In this document: positions 45,638-54,961 of the stretch, piece after piece
Position numbering within the stretch: position 1 is the stretch's first letter
How the letters are laid out: each line of letters begins with the position of its first letter
Source of the DNA: Adineta vaga
Lineage: Eukaryota; Animalia; Rotifera
DNA length: 64,000 bases
Direction of reading: 5' to 3'
Assembly: GCA_021613535.1 (NCBI GenBank)
Contig: CP075496.1
Span: forward strand, 5,642,001-5,706,000
Notes under the pieces: model-generated
What the model saw: only the letters and a program-made list of their open reading frames with translations
Told to the model about the DNA's origin: nothing
Database searches by the model: none
Position numbers and translations under genes: made by a program

Positions 45638-47914
45638 ATGGTTGAAACCTCGGTGTGGTTTATTTTGATTTGGTTACTTAATTTACAAAATATACAATCA
45701 ATCGATAATATCAAGTAAATTTATTTTGAAAGAGAAAAATTTGTAGTTAAAACTGAATATTTTCTTTGATAAACATCTAGTTATTTGAATGGCTTGAAAA
45801 ACGAAATACATCTAAATACAACATCAGGACTGTTTCAAGGTAAACAAGTCACGATTCAAAATGTTTCAATTCGACAATTTTTCGGTATTTCATACGGTGA
45901 AAAACCAGTGCGATTTGAACGATCTACTTTACGACGATATAATTCACAATCAATTATTCATGCCATAAAACAACCACCTGCATGTCCACAAATATCGGAT
46001 GATCATTCATATGGTCCATTTCAATTATCTAATCGTTTTGATGAAGATTGTTTAACATTAAATATATTTATACCAGAACCGAGATCATCATCGATACCAA
46101 AAGCGATTATGGTTTTCTCTTATAGTTCGTTGAATCAAATTGGTTCAGCATCTTTAGTTGATGGAAGTGTACTTGCTGCTCTTGGTGATGTAATTGTGAT
46201 TACTATTAATCATCGTTTGAATATCTTTGGTTTTCTTTCATCGAATATGCCAGGAAATTATGGATTATATGATCAATTATTAGCATTGAAATGGATATCA
46301 TTAAATGCCAAACAATTCAACGGAGATTCAAAACGAATAACATATGTAGGTCATTCAACTGGTGCTGTAAATGCTCTTCTACTTGCAATGTCGAATTATT
46401 CAGATGGATTATTAACACGAGTTATTGCTCAAAGTGGTTGTCCATTAAATCGATGGTATATATTATAATTTAGGCTTATTTTTATCTGATAAGATTCTTT
46501 ATAGGGCAATTGATCGACAGCCAAAAGTTCGTTTCAATAATGTCATGAAACAAAATAATATGAATGTTAAAAAAAAATTCATAAAATCGAGTATGGATCG
46601 ATTGAAAACGATGCCAATAGAAGAGTTTCATTATATGTATCGTGATGAATTATCAGAATTGCCAGATTATCCGTAAGAAATCGAACTATTTAATTTCATA
46701 TTTGACTAAATTTCGTGTGTGTGTGTGTGTCTTTCTTCAATGTTAGATTTCCAGTTGTTGATGATGATCTAATATTTCATGATTTTGAATATGTGATTCG
46801 TACTGGTTCATTGAGGAATATTGATATTTTAATCGGTGTGACAGCGGATGAATCGTTATCTACAGCTGAAGAACATATATTTTATCATTATTTACCGAAA
46901 AATGGCCGTCCAACAGATTTACATTCGTCAATATCGAAAAATATTCGAACATCTTCAACAAGACGATCTTTGACTGTAAATGAACAAGCACACGGATTTT
47001 CCTATTTTCGAAAAAATAATTATATTAAAAAGTATTTACAAACAAATCATCCAGAATATCTTTGTTTCTATGATGAAATACGAACACGATATACTCCAAT
47101 GAAAAATCATCAACATAATGTAACTGAGACCACTCGTCTCTACACGGATCTAGTCAGGTAAACAAATTACATTAATATCAATCAGTATCATTCCTTTGTA
47201 TCTCTAGTGATTTGATGATTTATTATGATTTAATTCATTTTCTTCATGAACGTTTATATTCAAAATCTCTTGCATCAACTTATGTATATTATTATACGAA
47301 TCCACCGCTTTACAAACGCGAAAATTCTCTACACCATAACTCTCATATGGTCGGACATTTTGCTGAACTTGACCTTCTATTGGGCCTTCCATTTCTTAAT
47401 CGATCAGATATAGAAAGAATTACAAAGATGAATTTATCTTATACATCCAATGAAATCGAACTCAGTCATCAAATGATTCGATACTGGACAAATTTTGCTA
47501 AAACAGGTAATCAATTTCTTCTCTTATTTCACCACATATTATTGTTTCGGTTTTTTTGTCTTTCTCTCTAAAGGAAATCCAAATTCACCTGATAATGTTT
47601 CTATTTATTGGCCTTTATATGAATCCATTGAAAAATCATACATTAATTTCCATGGCAATCAAATTCGTGTAGAAAATCAATTTCTAGAGGAACGTTTTCG
47701 ATTTTGGGATATGATATCACATCGTCAAGTATGTTTACCATTTCATTGGTATCATACATTTTTACTTATTAGTATATTAATATTTACCATTCTCTTAATT
47801 GTAATTTATATTTTTTATAATACAAAACGTTCACGACGAAATATCAAACCAACTGAATTATTAACTGCAAATGTTATAACAACTTATGATTTTTTACCAA
47901 GTGCTGCTCCTTAA
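45638..47914 (+). CDS. Neuroligin-like / type-B carboxylesterase-fold single-pass membrane protein
   Basis: Signal-like exon MVETSVWFILIWLL; PPACPQ, EDCLTLNIF, DGSVLAALGDVIVITINHRLNIFGFLS, PGNYGLYDQLLALKWI, GHSTG, IAQSG, YWTNFAKTGNPN; C-terminal TM FLLISILIFTILLIVIYIFY and a short tail. Confidence 0.88.
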
Positions 47915-48636
47915 TTTCCATATCTATTTCTTTCTCTGTCTTCTTTTGTCTATTATGTGCCTGTTTAATTCTAATTAGTTTAACTTATGTCAATAAATCA
48001 GTTCTTCTTTTTTTATTTATCACATAAAAAGAAAGTCTATCAAAAAAAGAGAAAAAGACTGTCATAAATTGAGTTGAAGCACTAGCGAACGAATATTGTG
48101 CCATTTCTCTCCTCTTGCTATACATGTGAATCTATTCAACAACTTCATAAACATTGAATATGAATATATATATATATATATTAGATCTAATTTTACCAGT
48201 ATATTCAATCTATAAAGTATGAATAGGTTTGTGTTATATGCTTATCTGATTGATGAACAATCGCTCATGTTTCTTCTCTCTATCAGCGGTGAATTGATGA
48301 AGAACGCAAAATGTCGACAATGGTAACGCTGGTCGAATGAAATTTTCTTTCGTCTGTTCCGTTTTTTTATGTCCTTTCTCGTCAGTGGGTTGAAATGTGA
48401 AGAAAAAAAGAAACCAAGAGGTAGAAGCAATGTAAAGGAAGAGAAAAGAAAAAGAGAAACTCATGCAGACAGGTATGATTCATTCATATACGTGTTGACC
48501 GACGTTGAAGCAGTGGACATAGTGAGCGCGCGTGTATATGTACAGTTGTGTCCTTTGCTTGAACGCGACATTTTCAAGGTTGTATGAATAATCCCTATTG
48601 CTTAGAAAGAAGATTCAATCAACGTAAAAACTAGAA

Positions 48637-51600
48637 ATGGTAAGAATTAAATGACTATCAAAATGACAACCTTGAAAAGTTCACGATCGTATTTTTTTAC
48701 TTTTTCTTCTACTAGAATGGTGGTTATGCAAATGGAGGCGGTGGTAATGATCGAAATGATTCGACTCGAATTGTATCTTATCGATCAGCAGTTAGCCGAG
48801 ATCATTCCCGAACAACTCATCGAAGCAAACGAAAACGTGTTGGTAATGATATTGATTTAAATGATATTAATGCTGATTTAGTTTATGTAAGTTTTTATTT
48901 GTTATTTGTATTCTTTCTTTCGATACGATTTTTTATTCAATTTAGGATGAACATCAAATTTCCATTGAAGAACTTGTACATCGATTTGATACAGATCTAA
49001 GAACAGTAATTAACAGTTGATATTTTAATTTAATACTTGTTAATTTATTTATTAGGGTTTAACAAATATACAAGCTCGACAACGATTAATTGATGAAGGT
49101 CGAAATCATGTTGAACCACCACATGTCAGTATTTCTAAATCATGTGAACGTTTTTGGCTTCAACCATATATATTCTTCATTGCCATTTTATCTTTATTGG
49201 CTATTTTATGTTTCGTTGCTTTTGCTATTCAATTAAATACAAGACAAGAAATAACATATGAAAATGTAATCAAACGATATTTTTCGAAAATGAACTATTA
49301 ATTTGAATATTTTTCTCTAATATTTAGCTTTATATGCTCATTGTTTTGATTATCTTCATTCTTTTACCAAGTATATTTACATTTGCTGTTAGTCATATAA
49401 GTGCCAACAAGTTACAATATTTACGATATCAAATAAAACAAGTAAGAAAACGATGAACAAGAAGAAGAAAAATCTCATTTGAGTTATTTCGTGTACATAA
49501 TAAGACACAAAAAAAGATCAGTAGACATGTAACAAAACGGAAGCCCTCCGATTATCGTCAGAGGACGAAAGTGTGTTTAAGAGAAGATGAAGAAGAAAAA
49601 CGAAAGGTGTGTATTCATGTTCGTCCTTCTCATAAACATCACATCACATCATAATATAAGATTGTGAATGATGAAGATGATCCTTCAAAAATCGATAGAC
49701 ACATACACAACACAATGATGACATTTTTCAATATTCTGACATATTATTATTGTATATTTCAAACGTACTCGCGTCATTTTTTTTAATCCAATAAGTCTCG
49801 ACTTGATGTTTATTACTGTTCTAATCGTTATTGAATAAGAAAAAAAACCGAGTAAGTTTTCAAACAATATCGATAACAACAATGATATTATCTACGGTAT
49901 TCATATATTTATCAATTTATTTTACAATAATTATTGGGCAAGAAATGCCATGTGAACCAAAAGATTCATGGTCATGGACACCATGGTTTAATTTTCATAC
50001 GCCATCAATTAAAGGGGAATATGAATTACATGCAGCTATTCGAAGTCGTCATCCAACAATCGTTTGTGCTGAACCACGTGGTGTATCAGCTGTCAATCAA
50101 GCCGGCGTTGATATGAATCAAACACTTGATATGATTTTATTACGTACGAATGATGTTTTCTGTTTAAATAGTTATGATCCGAAATATCAACGAAAAATGT
50201 GTGATGACTATAGTGTACGATATTGTTGCCCAAATTTCCTACCTCCATCCTCACCTTCACACCCACCACCACCACCGCCGCCGCCACCTCCACCACCATC
50301 ACCACCACAAACGATTAGAAATCAAATACGCGACATGTTTATTGGAAATACTACACATACAACAGCTTTAATAGATAATCAATCACGATTTGTTCAATCT
50401 ACATGTGGTCGAATAGCACGTTCGACAACATTTCATTCAAATACTCGTACAGGATTTTTTTCAAATCTATTTCATTCCATGCTTTCAAAAATTATTAATG
50501 GTGTTGAATCACGTCCGAATGGTTGGCCTTGGCTAGTATCAATTGGTGTGCGATATCGTGGCCCATCTGGTTTATGGCAAAATCGCACACATATCTGTGG
50601 TGGAACATTAATTGAACCATCACATGTTCTTACAGCTGCTCATTGCCTTGAACAGAAAATTGATGATCGTTATGTTCCATTTACATCAACAAATCCTACA
50701 TTGGAATCGTTTTTTATTCTACGTATTGGTATTCATGATATTCGTACAACACGTGCTGATGAAATCTATGGAGCACGACGTATATTTGTTCATGAAAGAT
50801 TCATTGCTAGTACATTTGAAAATGATATTGCAATCATTCGACTTGATCGACCTGTTGTCACTACTGAACATAGAGCACCAATTTGTTTACCATCGAGTAA
50901 TGTCTCACCAGGTACACAAGTAACAGTAGCTGGTTGGGGTACAGTTGCTGAAACTTCACGTGTTCATTCGAATGTACTTCGACAAGCAAATGTGAATATT
51001 TTACCAGCAACGAATTGTCGTGTGTATATGGATGTTCATTATGATACATCAAAACAATTATGTGCAGCTGCTTTAGATTGGTCAAAAGATACATGGTATG
51101 AATTTTTGATTCTGCTAGTTTTGTTTGATTAGCAATGAAATGGTGAACTTTTGGTTTTAGTGCTGGTGATAGTGGTGGACCATTGATGCATCAAGAAAAT
51201 GGTGAATGGTCAATAGGTGGTATTACCTCATATGGGTATGGTTGTTCTAAACGTGGATTTCCTGGTGTCTACGTTCGTACAGTGCCATATTTGACATGGA
51301 TTAAACAAAAAATGTTGAGCACTTATTAGAATTTGCTTCTTCTTCATTTTCATCATCATCATCATCATCATCTCGTTTTGTTTTATTTTACACATATTAA
51401 TAAATGACTCTAAGCAAAAAAAAGCAACAAAAAAAATATACGCGAATAAATAGAGATGTTTTTTTTTTGTTATTGTTGTTTGGGAATTTGTTTTTCATAT
51501 TAACTTTTATTTTTCATTGTTTTAGCACGTCAATGTTAAACGGGAAGGTGAATGGCAACGTGTTAATTCGGAAGATCTCGTTCGCGGTGATATTATACAT

Positions 51601-54600
51601 GTTCGAAGTGGTGATCGTGTTGCAGCTGATATTCGAATTATTCATACATCGGCTCTTCTTGTTGATAATTCAATCATTACAAGAGATTCAGATCCTGTAC
51701 CTCGATCAGGCGATTATACAAATACAAATCCATTGGAAACGAATAATTTATTATTAAGTGGAACAAGTGTAAGTGATTTTGATTTAATACGTAGACAAAT
51801 ACTGAATTACAATATGCTTCTTTCTTGCTTTTAGGTAACTCATGGATCGGCAATTGGTATCGTTGTTAAAACAGCAGAACATACCCTTTTGGGTAAAATG
51901 TGCAATACAACTGAAAGTAATACAAGAGTAAAGAAAAGATCTTTTATGAAATATCATTCTAATATCTAGGTTTGGATCCAAAAAGAACTATATATGCACG
52001 TACTATTCGTACAATGTTTCTACTTCTTACGGTCGTTGGTTTGGCATTGGGCGTGATTTTTTTCATTATTCTATATGCAACTGGTTATTATTGGTTATAT
52101 GCAATTCAAATAATGATTTCAGTTTACATTGCTTGCATTCCAGAAATTCTTCCTGCTATAATTCATGTAATGAACAAAGAATATTGTTTTCAATAGGAAT
52201 AGAAATATAATACTGTGTTTGTTTTTCAGTTATGTTTAACACGTACAGCACAACATATGGCTACTCGAAATTGTCTTGTCAAAGTTATTGATGCTTTATA
52301 CGATTTAGCTTGTACGACAATATTATTTGTTGATAAATCTGTGTTAACAAGTAATAAAATGACTGCAAGTCAAATATGGATACCAGCGAATCAAGAACGT
52401 ATTCTCACAGCAGCACCATCTGAAGATCCAAATGGTAAGTATTTTTATAAAATTCTTTTGAAAGAAAACGAATCTTTTTCTCTTTTAATTATAGTCGTAG
52501 AAGAATGTATGCATATGCCCGGATGGCAATCATTAATTCGTACAGCAGTTCTCTGTAGTCGAGCAGAATATTTTACGGATCAACATCAATCAAGTCGGCA
52601 AATGCCATTAGGAGAATGGTTTGTTCAGAAATTATTTTTCTTGATTTTCTTTTTACAAAATTGGATATCTCAATTTTAGGGATGGTGATGCACGTGAAAT
52701 AGCGATTATACAATATGCTGAGTATGCCAATTTGGATATCGCACAGATTCGTCAACGATATCCTCGACGTGATGTTCATCATTTCACACCAGAAAATAAA
52801 CGAATTGTTCGTTATTTGACAAGATTTTGTTTTCAAAATTTGAATTTTTATTTGTATTTAAGGAATCATTTCATCTTAATAATGAAGCTAATATGGAAGG
52901 AATGCATCTGGATTGTATGATGGGTGCACCAGAACGTGTTTTTCATCGATGTTCAACAGTTATCATAGATGATGATGAAGTACCAACGGATGGTAATATT
53001 ATTTTAGAAAGAATGTTTAATGAAAGTTTAATACAAATGGGTTCGTTGGGTGATACTGTTCTTGGTAAAATAAATATATAAATTTACTTCGAATTCAATA
53101 TATATATATATATATCAATTGATATTTGAAAAGGTTTTGCTGAACGACAATATCATCGAGATGATGGTCCACAAGAAAATTGGCGTTTTCTTGGTCTTAT
53201 GTCATTTAGTGATCCAATTCAAGAAAATGCCGTTACAGCTATTGAAAAATGTCGATTAGCTGGAGTTAAAGTAAATCTTACGTTTGTCAATATAATAGAG
53301 AAAATCAAGATCTTTTTCTCTATTCTAGGTTATTTTGATTTCTGGTGATCATCCTGTTACAACATGTGCACTAGCAAGACGTCTGACGATTTTTTCACCC
53401 GAATCAGAAACGGTCGAAGATGTTGCTATTAGACTTGGTGTTCCAGTTGATCGTGTTGGACCACGGTATGATTAAAATGAATGAGAAAGAAATAACTATA
53501 GACAGATCGTATTCCAATTGTCACATAAATCAGTGCGATACCAAAATGATAAATTCGATGTTTAGAGATGGAGAAAGACTAATGAGCGAAAGTCATAAAA
53601 AAACTTTATGTTTCGTACTTATTTTGTTTCATTTCCTAGACAAGCAACAGCAGTTGTTATTCATGGTCGTGATTTACATAACATATCTCAAATTGATCTG
53701 GCTGATACAATAATCAATGCTCCTGAAGTTGCTTTTGCTCGTACAACACTTCGACAAAAACAAAAAATTGTTGAATGTGCTCAATTAGGTAAAGCTGTGG
53801 TCACATGTTTTTGTCAATCATCGGATGATCGTGGTGCTATACGAAAAGCTGATGTTAGTGTAGCAATGTTGAATGGTAGTAGTGAAGCATCACGACAAGA
53901 AACAGATCTTGTTTTACTTGATAATGATTTAAATACGCTTGTTGGTGCTATTGAAGAAGGTCGTTATCTTTGGGAAAATATAAAAAAATGTTTAGCTTAT
54001 TGTCTTGTTGTTAATGCAACACAACTTCTTCCATTTTTGATGTTTATTATATTTCAAATACCTTTAACACTTGGGCCAATTACATTATTACTTGTCGATT
54101 TAATTACACAATTATTGCCAACCATTTCTTTAGCTTACGAAAGACCAGAATCGGATATAATGACGCGAGGGCCTATCGATAAATTTCGCGATCGATTAAT
54201 TAATCGAAGGTAGAATTAATCTCTTGAATGAAGAGTAAGATTTATTTGTTTTTTATTTATAGACTTTTATTACTTTGTTGGGGTCAAATTGGTTTAATAG
54301 AACTCACAGCTGGATTTTTCACATGGGTTGTTGTTATGGCTGAAAATGGATTTTGGCCATCACGTTTAGTTGGTATTCGAAAAGCGTGGGATGCAGCAGC
54401 TATAAATGATTTAGAGGATTCTTATGGTCAAGAATGGGTACGAAAAAAAAGAAAAGAAAAATTTTTTGAGGAAATTATATTATATATCATTTAGACTTTT
54501 CGACAAAGAAAAATTCTTGAATATATGGGTTATGCAGCATTTTTAGCGGCTATTATTGTTGTACAAATGGCTAATTTACTCATATGTAAAACGCGTCGTT

Positions 54601-54961
54601 TATCTTTATTTCAACAAGGTTTACGAACGTATGTAATCGATTTAAAGTGGAATTTTACCTGATGTTCTTTTTCTGTTCTTTTTTAGAAATATGTTTGTGA
54701 ATATATGTTTAATATTAATGCCAGTTGTAGCTGTACTATTAATCTATATTCCAGGACTTAATCGTGCTATTTTTCTCGAACGATTACAGTAAGATTTCTT
54801 CTGTTTTACTGATATTTTTATAATTTCACGTTATTTTTAGACCTTTATGGTGGTTATGTCCTATTCCATTTGCCTTAATGATCTTTGGTTATGATGAAAT
54901 ACGTAAATTTTTCATTCGAAAATATCCCGAAGGTTGGGTATCAAAAGAGACGTATCATTGA
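48637..54961 (+). CDS. Na+/K+-ATPase alpha-like (P2C) protein with degenerate catalytic motifs; many short introns plus one 2.1-kb intron (49442-51525)
   Basis: [126 protein letters not shown]. The start (ATG micro-exon at 48637) is inferred. Confidence 0.92.
49882..51329 (+). CDS. Secreted trypsin-like serine protease with WxxW (Mucin2/CILP-type) domain and poly-Pro linker, nested in the ATPase-like gene intron; exons 49882-51095, 51161-51329
   Basis: Signal peptide [19 protein letters not shown]; WTPWFN...GEYE...CLN...[10 protein letters not shown]; activation site K|IINGVES; LTAAHC, ENDIAII, KDTCAGDSGGP (S1 Asp present), PGVYVR; AATAAA at 51399. Confidence 0.93.

Follow-up and report, generated by a model that had tools for sequence, protein, structure and literature searches.

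Within the window, that is, the whole 64,000-nucleotide stretch of the Adineta vaga genome analysed here, a Na/K-ATPase alpha-like gene of chromosome 4 occupies positions 48637-54961 of the forward strand. We have rebuilt its coding part from the DNA and obtained 3114 bases (1037 codons plus the stop) spread over 19 exons, with no internal stop or frameshift (Table 1). All 18 introns are of the GT..AG type; 16 of them measure 50-76 nt, one 174 nt and one 2084 nt. A previous sequence-only reading had traced exons that join in frame to a KETYH end, and the 19-exon model bears this out, the coordinates given for the ATG, TRDS, DKSVLT and the closing TGA being exact. One nuance is that the traced exons are parted after exon 5 by the 2084-nt intron, which houses a complete trypsin-like gene on the same strand. 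This nested arrangement is also kept in two related lineages, L012 and L022.

Table 1. Exons, motif sites and nested gene of the alpha-like locus (positions in the window).
Feature	Position	Strand	Content	Support or comparison
Exon 1, coding part	48637..48639	+	ATG alone; exon extends upstream as 5' UTR	Joint 48639>48716 in 4 transcript runs; GTAAGA donor abuts the ATG; in-frame TAA upstream at 48625-48627
Exon 2	48716..48886	+	N-terminal tail, low-complexity	Joints in transcripts; 67-77% identity in L012, L022
Exon 3	48946..49005	+	Conserved N-terminal segment begins	Joints in transcripts; alignable to canonical paralogues
Exon 4	49056..49265	+	Cation_ATPase_N segment, M1	PF00690 E 2.6e-4; joints in transcripts
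Exon 5	49328..49441	+	M2	Protein 100% identical in L012, L022; joints in transcripts
Intron 5	49442..51525	+	2084 nt, GT..AG	Skip present in full-length contigs of X1, X17, X19
Nested gene	about 49831-51329	+	Complete trypsin + Mucin2_WxxW gene, same strand	Pfam Trypsin E 1e-33
Exon 6	51526..51768	+	A domain; TRDS (51679-51690) for TGES	PF00122 E 1.2e-16
Exon 7	51835..51916	+	A domain end	Joints in transcripts
Exon 8	51970..52166	+	M3-M4; PEIL (52140-52151) for PEGL, glutamate retained	Joints in transcripts
Exon 9	52230..52434	+	Phosphorylation-site segment; DKSVLT (52332-52349) for DKTGTLT, shorter by one residue	
Exon 10	52495..52618	+	N domain	Acceptor 52495 backed by transcript joint; 62-80% identity among lineages
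Exon 11	52680..52806	+	N domain; FTPENK (52783-52800), adenine-pocket F and K retained	PF13246 E 4.3e-6
Exon 12	52863..53064	+	N domain; MGAPE (52920-52934) for KGAPE, GDTV (53049-53060) for GERV	
Exon 13	53134..53270	+	P domain; DPIQ (53211-53222) for DPPR	DPIR in L023, L024
Exon 14	53329..53465	+	P domain; SGDHP (53341-53355) for TGDHP	
Exon 15	53640..54209	+	P domain end, M5-M6	PDB alignment to Na/K-ATPase alpha-1 E 4e-45; TIGR01106 184 bits
Exon 15 site	53752-53766	+	K691 equivalent retained	
Exon 15 site	53812-53829	+	CQSSDD for GDGVND	
Exon 15 site	54010-54024	+	VNATQ for SNIPE	
Exon 15 site	54097-54111	+	DLITQ for DLGTD	
Exon 16	54263..54437	+	M7, extracellular M7-M8 loop; 10-residue beta-subunit contact (54408-54437)	
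Exon 17	54495..54628	+	M8; QMAN (54564-54575) for QWAD, CKTRR (54585-54599) retained	
Exon 18	54687..54788	+	M9, without the acidic pair of canonical M9	
Exon 19	54841..54961	+	M10, C-terminus; KETYH (54944-54958), then TGA	

Transcripts of the gene are found in four studies. Three of them hold single spliced full-length contigs (3340, 3364 and 3247 nt in X1, X17 and X19, respectively), and the fourth (X5) holds pieces, so that the expression on which the earlier proposal of a functional gene depended has been observed. The contigs bear 14 of the 16 joints on the examined stretch, including those at the ATG-only exon 1 and across intron 5, and contig pieces agree with a fifteenth. This comparison covered the first 16 joints, the final two (around exon 18) lying beyond it; these fit the X1 contig, whose 567 nt 3' of exon 15 would consist of 532 exonic nt and about 35 nt of UTR. 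Beyond the gene's own locus, the genome search has returned no high-identity place, so a retrocopy is not the source of the spliced form; nor has the search returned a homoeologous second copy on chromosome 1.

In an exon-by-exon profile search, hits to PF00690, PF00122, PF13246 and PF00689 reproduce the domain order of the P-type ATPase fold. TIGR01106 is the best model for every scoring exon, and its matches follow one another in order between model positions 36 and 997. Its exon scores sum to roughly 600 bits versus a cut-off of 946.1, though such an exon-wise sum underestimates the score of the whole protein. Among PDB chains, Na/K-ATPase alpha-1 to alpha-4 match best (E 4e-45, versus 2e-20 for SERCA). 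In the tree, the rotifer family forms one clade (support 100) inside the metazoan alpha clade (support 99), and its stem measures 0.8 changes per site, versus 0.03-0.06 for the tips.

We have compared the motif states with solved Na/K-ATPase chains and with the four further alpha-type genes of A. vaga. All four paralogues carry canonical catalytic motifs, and only the gene studied here has lost them. TGES is the dephosphorylation motif of these enzymes and DKTGT the phosphorylation motif, the first aspartate of GDGVND (D710) binds Mg2+, and K501 and R544 are ligands of the ATP phosphates. The rewritten motifs reported earlier (TRDS, DKS-VLT, MGAPE, GDTV, DPIQ, SGD, CQSSDD, PEIL, VNATQ, DLITQ and QMAN) are all found. 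The TGES glutamate is replaced by aspartate and the adjoining glycine by R or K, giving TRDS in A. vaga, TKDS in five of the other lineages and NKDP in one. DKTGT is replaced by DKSVLT in six of seven lineages and by DKSILT in one, with D and K retained, and TGDGVND, which is present in 127 of the 150 nearest representatives drawn from 1.8 billion proteins, reads FCQSSDD, its first D changed to Q, its last D retained and a new aspartate beside it. The K501 and R544 equivalents are M and T, while TGD has become SGD, a conservative change that leaves the aspartate in place. The claim of nearly complete catalytic rewriting thus holds for the motifs as such, but not for every residue in them, since the family still has the phospho-aspartate and the next lysine, K691, the aspartate of TGD and the final one of GDGVND, as well as F and K of the adenine pocket.

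The replacements are kept across the family with few lineage exceptions, as T[RK]DS, DKS-VLT, MGAPE, G[DE]TV, SGDHP, CQSS[DE]D, VNxTQ, DLITQ and QxAN. That is, the degenerate motifs are shared by the orthologues, while the four other A. vaga paralogues are canonical. Some of the remnants vary from lineage to lineage (NKDP, VNVAE, DPIR, GQSADD), which fits the loss of the old role and says nothing on any new one.

The cation-coordinating residues, which from established structures we take to be E327, S775, N776, E779, D804, D808 and D926 (pig alpha-1 numbering), had been described as neutralised. This applies to part of them: S775 is V, E779 and D808 are Q and D926 is N, so at least three of the five acidic ligands examined are amides, whereas the E327, N776 and D804 equivalents are retained. 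The E779 position reverts to E in one lineage (VNVAE). One cation could still bind, E327, D804 and N776 being kept. The SYGQEW beta-contact loop between M7 and M8 matches that of the canonical paralogues exactly and does not vary within the family, and together with CKTRR it is conserved as had been stated. Beta-subunit genes (PF00287) lie at at least five places in the A. vaga genome, and from this one conserved loop the protein probably pairs with a beta subunit. The C-terminus reads ETYH in six of seven lineages and ETNH in one, the canonical YY thus being YH.

The same gene is present in seven other environmental (Adineta-like) lineages, at 86-92% protein identity. The dN/dS values are 0.02-0.15 between the A. 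vaga gene and these lineages, and 0.02-0.30 when every pair is included; dS ranges from 0.16 up to saturation. For a pair with unsaturated synonymous sites, the bootstrap 95% confidence interval of dN/dS is 0.10-0.16, and further intervals are 0.12-0.19 and 0.07-0.11. No domain exceeds an ω of 0.22. The lowest values belong to the phosphorylation-site segment of exon 9 (0.01-0.04), the membrane domains show 0.02-0.12, and the cytoplasmic domains are equally constrained; 608 of 843 codons (72%) are invariant across lineages. Strong purifying selection acts on every domain of the gene, in at least eight lineages, in agreement with the earlier suggestion of a selected paralogue and against neutral evolution.

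Loss of catalytic residues together with purifying selection and expression is the state expected of a pseudoenzyme, and the residue states strongly suggest that ATPase activity has been lost. In such a protein, the ATP-driven cycle of phosphorylation and dephosphorylation could not run and 3 Na+ / 2 K+ could not be bound, because the phosphorylation loop is short, D710 is Q, the TGES glutamate is D beside R or K, K501 is M, R544 is T and E779, D808 and D926 are amides. The 10-helix P-type ATPase fold would persist, and so would pairing with the beta subunit via the unchanged SYGQ loop, M7 and M8. We therefore consider it likely that the gene encodes a selected, non-pumping pseudoenzyme whose role would be that of a scaffold in the membrane, a junction partner or a regulator of the beta subunit or of the pump; a job without pumping is the most probable one because the catalytic and ion residues are largely replaced and purifying selection is nevertheless strong. 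Sequence narrows the candidate roles (scaffold, beta partner, sensor, pore) little, and it does not separate a scaffold from a regulator. As the phosphorylation-site segment and the adenine-pocket residues are under very tight constraint, the cytoplasmic headpiece may well still be in use, perhaps to bind a ligand (nucleotide) or to contact other proteins, and not for catalysis. Given the retained residues, residual nucleotide binding or even slow phosphorylation is possible.

This tight constraint is also what a P-type ATPase still working with unusual chemistry or cargo might show, with the kept aspartate, S for T and a new DD pair for GDGVND. In the HAD superfamily, either S or T is tolerated in motif II, and a DD pair can form motif IV; DKS, SGD, K691 and the DD ending CQSSDD are conserved, the phospho-aspartate segment being the most conserved part of all. 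We regard this as quite improbable. The phosphorylation loop has a one-residue deletion, the Mg2+ ligand D710 is Q, the glycine beside the TGES glutamate is R or K, and K501 and R544 have gone; in mutagenesis studies of Na/K- or Ca-ATPases, each such change alone is reported to strongly impair or abolish phosphorylation. Besides, what is left of TGES and GDGVND differs from one lineage to another (NKDP, GQSADD), in a manner untypical of catalytic residues, and the rough TIGR01106 sum, itself an underestimate, stays below the cut-off. Far more improbable still, to the point of being negligible, is the reading of the locus as a mere pseudogene in decay or an artefact of annotation. The lost motifs and the missing homoeologous copy on chromosome 1 would accord with it, but neither frame disruption, nor neutral evolution, nor lack of transcript is found: the 1037-codon frame is intact, full-length spliced mRNA occurs in several studies, dN/dS is far below 1 in eight lineages with synonymous sites up to saturated, and 72% of codons are invariant. 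We have rejected it.

A protein that is not catalytic could still conduct. The pump scaffold would then have turned into a passive route for cations, or into a sensor of voltage or ions; in place of the charged ion sites it would have a cavity that is polar but for the most part uncharged, and both Na+ site III and the C-terminal plug would be dismantled. The residues that replace E779, D808 and D926 are isosteric amides (Q, Q, N), conserved and not random, next to the retained E327, D804 and N776 equivalents; ω is low in the membrane domains; and the terminal YY is YH, or NH in one lineage. According to PMC2812498, loss or mutation of the C-terminal tyrosines in the real pump leads to hyperpolarisation-activated inward leak currents, which would favour conduction. 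Even so, it appears unlikely, as the leak of mutant pumps relies on the conformations of an active enzyme, constraint on the cytoplasmic domains equal to that on the membrane part would be superfluous in a simple pore, and E is back at the E779 position in one lineage.

For the preferred non-pumping role, the favoured functional models would be ATPalpha/Nervana in the septate junctions of Drosophila (PMC12125057, citing Paul et al. 2007) and CATP-1 of C. elegans (PMC11631496, which cites Ruaud and Bessereau 2007), for both of which transport-independent functions have been proposed. Both proteins keep all catalytic motifs and also pump, and the pump-independent role is reported to have been shown by engineered dead mutants; in the rotifer gene, by contrast, the catalytic residues were removed by evolution, with intact paralogues in the genome. 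Canonical alpha subunits (human, pig and shark alpha-1; A. vaga C3:11.51 Mb, C6:3.49 Mb and C6:1.47 Mb) share with it the 10-helix layout with A, N and P domains, 44-45% identity in exon 15, the SYGQEW loop, CKTRR and a similar C-terminus. The gene studied here differs from them in its altered TGES, DKTGT, KGAPE, GERV, DPPR and GDGVND, the three amides, V at S775, H for Y as the last residue, its very long stem branch and its TIGR01106 sum, a rough underestimate, below the cut-off.

Partial motif decay is also seen in arachnid alpha-like proteins, namely Cordylochernes scorpioides 'ATP1A1' (UYV71252.1) and Stegodyphus dumicola XP_035207125/6, in which TGES reads TGKC or TGNS, DKTGT reads DMTGTLT or DKTGIIT, and GDGVND reads GQAAGD or GDSLED. 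Far fewer motifs are lost in these single gene predictions: KGAPE, GERV and TGDHP/TGDHD are kept, and the pseudoscorpion keeps the ion sites. The tree shows no specific grouping of these proteins with the rotifer family, and their decay is apparently independent; a literature search has found no publication on them. Within A. vaga, the P2C gene at C4:0.717 Mb shares with the gene studied here a lineage-specific alpha-type diversification and altered ion-site residues (SKIPE, QWTV; ETSY end). Unlike the latter, it keeps TGES, DKTGTLT, KGAPE, DPPR, TGDHP and TGDGVND, and such remodelled P2C pumps of A. vaga are most likely active, with a different cargo.

The pump-like gene is real, transcribed and under strong selection. 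We have built its model from three-frame translations, after which each junction was inspected on the DNA. The coding length is 3114 bases, i.e., 1037 codons with no internal stop, and all of the 18 introns show GT..AG ends; their lengths are 50-76 nt in 16 cases, with one of 174 nt and one of 2084 nt. Coding exon 1 consists of the ATG alone and is preceded, at a distance of 12 nt, by an in-frame TAA. The genome comprises 100.8 Mb in six contigs, where the window (G+C ~30%) is placed at C4:5642001-5706000. In the AV20 haploid assembly of A. vaga, chromosomes 1-3 are homoeologous to chromosomes 4-6 (PMC8494291). A genome search has found no homoeologous copy of the pump-like gene on chromosome 1.

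Coordinates of the pump-like gene and neighbouring features in the window
Feature	Position	Strand	Description and basis
Carboxylesterase-like ORFs	~47212-47914	+	upstream of the pump-like gene; resemble the 3' end of a carboxylesterase-type gene
Pump-like gene	ATG 48637 to TGA 54959-54961	+	19 exons; manual model and frame check
Intron 5 of the pump-like gene	49442-51525	+	2084 nt; harbours a complete same-strand gene
Nested gene	49831-51329	+	Mucin2_WxxW and trypsin-like serine protease with proline-rich linker; Pfam; inside intron 5
ORF overlapping exon 6	51404-51757		out of frame; no Pfam match
TRDS motif	51679-51690		exact by coordinate mapping
DKS motif	52332		exact by coordinate mapping

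The nested trypsin gene is partly covered by contigs of run X17. It is also present in the corresponding intron of L012 and L022, two loci from environmental contigs, despite near-saturated synonymous sites. In addition, L012 carries COesterase-family ORFs at the upstream position equivalent to that of the carboxylesterase-like ORFs, which indicates that the local gene order has been kept.

As transcript evidence, Logan contigs were aligned to 48610-54609; they show the spliced form and give no expression levels, and the run type (RNA) is only guessed. One contig each from the runs X1 (3340 nt), X17 (3364 nt) and X19 (3247 nt), belonging to three studies, contains exons only; of the 16 joints that the model places in this range, these contigs show 14, among them the skips of 76 nt directly behind the ATG and of 2084 nt across the nested gene. 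These 14 include the exon 7-8 joint; at the exon 12-13 joint the contig pieces are consistent with the model, as are the pieces from a fourth study (run X5). Beyond 54609, the last two junctions (exon 17-18 and the one after it) are supported by the X1 contig, since its 567 nt 3' of exon 15 are accounted for by the 532 nt of exons 16-19 and a short UTR. Since no second copy of high identity exists in the genome, the spliced form must derive from transcripts. Across runs, the transcript contigs repeatedly differ from the assembly by one base, at 51738 (A>G in three runs), 53231, 53982, 53997 and elsewhere. Most simply these would be allelic or strain variation.

The protein belongs with the Na/K-ATPase alpha subunits. 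All homology searches were run per exon, and the exons were joined solely for the frame check and the coordinate mapping. Against solved chains, exon 15 matches Na/K-ATPase alpha with an E value of 4e-45 and SERCA with 2e-20. The Pfam families of the N-terminal, E1-E2, N-domain and C-terminal regions are all matched, and the best NCBIfam model of every scoring exon is TIGR01106 (Na,H/K P-type ATPase alpha), in collinear order; the scores sum to ~600 bits, which is not a whole-protein score, with the family cut-off at 946. Beta-subunit genes are present in the A. vaga genome, together with four more genes of alpha type, which are 38-45% identical to the pump-like gene. These four paralogues are all canonical in the exon-wise alignment, with TGES, DKTGTLT, KGAPE, TGDHP, TGDGVND and S[NK]IPE, and with DPPR where covered; DLGTD is found in three, the fourth (L020) being not cleanly aligned there. 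This L020 gene, near C4:717 kb within C4:712500-722499 and thus on the same chromosome as the pump-like gene, has intact catalytic motifs with altered ion sites and C-terminus (SKIPE, QWTV, ETSY). Its last exon is found twice (L020 4562-4449 and 1446-1333), which points to a partial duplication in tandem or to a second, adjacent gene.

Compared with the solved chains and these paralogues, the rewriting of catalytic motifs claimed by the sequence-only reading is borne out, and its positions for TRDS, DKS and the gene end are exact. Residue numbers are those of pig alpha-1, after the published structures and mutagenesis; the residue roles are those of the Na/K- and Ca-ATPase literature. TGES is replaced by TRDS, DKTGTLT by DKS-VLT (one residue fewer), KGAPE by MGAPE (position K501), GERV by GDTV (R544), DPPR by DPIQ, and TGDGVND by FCQSSDD (D710 to Q, N713 to D). 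At the ion sites, SNIPE has become VNATQ (S775 to V, E779 to Q), DLGTD has become DLITQ (D808 to Q) and QWAD has become QMAN (D926 to N), while the C-terminal YY reads YH. On the other hand, D369, K370, the D of TGD (with T to S), K691 and D714 are retained, as are the adenine-pocket residues F475 and K480 (FTPENK), E446, the SYGQ loop and CKTRR. The same earlier reading had called the ion sites neutralised. S775, E779, D808 and D926 are indeed changed, but as a whole the statement goes too far, for E327 (PEIL), N776 and D804 remain. Overall, non-canonical residues occupy four of the seven ion-site positions and nearly all catalytic motifs, and they are conserved in the family.

In metagenomes and run assemblies, a word search with exon 15, in the range of proteins of 110-350 aa, gave seven ORF-sized proteins that are 88-95% identical. 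From their contigs, plus a metagenome scan with family-specific patterns that found only copies 90-98% identical, we derived the environmental loci L011-L016 and L021-L029. When the exons of the pump-like gene were projected on them, all were intact, giving seven further lineages. Protein identity to the pump-like gene is 86-92%, while that of third codon positions is just 46-89%. The environmental lineages could be species of Adineta, or partly homoeologues. One family lineage, seen in the proteins P0159/P0169 (374 aa, on a 31.7-kb metagenome contig), has exons 13-14 and 15-16 contiguous with the introns absent; its intron 14 is open in frame, so that the ORF caller read through, and it shows DPIR where the window gene has DPIQ.

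We have calculated dN/dS (or omega) by NG86 with bootstraps, where dS above ~1 is saturated and gives only lower-bound indications. The values are 0.02-0.15 against the window gene and 0.02-0.30 over all pairs, compared with 0.065-0.25 for canonical paralogue pairs in the A. vaga genome; the bootstrap 95% intervals are 0.10-0.16, 0.12-0.19 and 0.07-0.11 for L024, L023 and L022, respectively. By domain, omega is lowest in the phosphorylation-site segment (0.01-0.04), followed by the membrane parts (0.02-0.12), the second half of the P domain (0.04-0.08), the A domain (0.07-0.12), the N domain (0.09-0.19) and the N-terminal tail (0.2). Coverage in five or more lineages is given for 843 codons, of which 608 (~72%) are invariant. 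DKS[VI]LT, MGAPE, SGDHP, PEIL, DLITQ and SYGQEW show little or no variation, whereas other remnants drift: T[RK]DS or NKDP, G[DE]TV (EDTV in one lineage), DP[IM][QR], [CG]QS[SA][DE]D, [VI]NxTQ or VNVAE, and Q[MAI]AN. In pairwise comparisons of L011-L025 and the window gene, dN stays at 0.05-0.09 while dS spans from 0.16 to saturation, with an omega of 0.30 for L023-L024, the two closest loci. There would thus seem to be a small set of quickly changing sites beside the unchanging codons.

For the origin of the family, a tree of 728 columns was made from the seven family lineages that span these columns (thus without L016), together with the four paralogues of the A. vaga genome and 31 full-length representatives. 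In it, the family forms a single clade with support 100, nested in a clade (support 99) of rotifer canonical genes and arthropod alpha subunits, within which its sister is not resolved. Its stem measures 0.8 changes per site, against 0.03-0.06 for the terminal branches; that is, a burst of change was followed by stasis. Among 1.84 billion representatives no match exceeds 45% identity to the family, the best being 44-45% identical, and TGDGVND is kept in 127 of the 150 nearest. Since the family's own cluster is likewise missing from these matches, its representative perhaps having been withheld or merged in that set, the search cannot settle presence in other bdelloid genera or rotifers.

In studied pumps, several of the residues replaced here are each needed for phosphorylation, Mg2+ binding, dephosphorylation or ion occlusion. 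Because of these individual requirements, we infer that the pump-like protein should be unable to finish the Post-Albers cycle or to transport 3 Na+ / 2 K+, which also bears against a still-active enzyme with unusual chemistry, a rival that may be considered. Judging from the retained parts, the protein should keep the fold and probably still pairs with a beta subunit. A bare membrane anchor would hardly explain why the cytoplasmic headpiece is so tightly constrained, above all in the phosphorylation-site segment and the adenine-pocket residues; more likely, the surface of the headpiece is still in use and binds either a ligand or a partner. The best reading of the sequence is thus a non-pumping pseudoenzyme that would act as scaffold, junction partner or regulator; for real pumps, precedents of functions that need no pumping are cited in PMC12125057 and PMC11631496. 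A pseudogene is refuted, and a retrocopy rejected with it, by the intact frame, the spliced transcripts, the low dN/dS and the lack of a second high-identity copy.

Alternatively, the protein could be a passive pathway or sensor, in favour of which the amide substitutions are isosteric and the C-terminus is altered; leak currents of C-terminal pump mutants are described in PMC2812498. A more specific version, which we consider quite improbable, would see the family as a conformationally locked pump scaffold turned new membrane device. The conserved basic residue next to the aspartate of T[RK]DS would pair with the retained, unphosphorylatable DKS aspartate, and this pairing would mimic E2P, so that the extracellular gate of an ion pathway stripped of charge is fixed in a single state. 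Such an alpha-beta complex would be a cation leak or sensor, either constitutive or modulated by nucleotide, not a pump or mere scaffold, with the conserved adenine pocket as regulatory site.

The non-pumping jobs of the sodium pump, i.e., junction formation, scaffolding and signalling, have been debated for two decades, and most evidence for them has been gained with mutants engineered to be dead, in a protein whose pumping is itself essential. If the non-pumping pseudoenzyme reading is right, pumping and non-pumping roles have here been separated by evolution itself: an alpha-type protein without the catalytic and most ion-binding residues has stayed nearly unchanged across lineages with saturated synonymous sites, and it coexists with intact pump genes in one genome. 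The retained parts (beta-contact loop, membrane helices, phosphorylation-site segment and adenine pocket) would then list what a pump-independent function may need. An incomplete literature search found no natural, conserved 'dead' P2C ATPase and no natural inactive P-type or Na/K-ATPase, which leaves novelty unproven.

Partial motif decay is also shown by proteins of two arachnid species, annotated as Na/K-ATPase alpha or alpha-like. UYV71252.1 (P0037) of Cordylochernes scorpioides has TGKC, DMTGTLT, CPPR and TGQAAGD, and XP_035207126/5 (P0057/P0176) of Stegodyphus dumicola has TGNS, DKTGIIT, TGDSLED, ANISE, DIGIN and QCFS. In the tree they are not specifically grouped with the rotifer family. 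Judged by their motifs, they may be independent non-pumping paralogues, which hints that such proteins may form a recurrent, overlooked class.
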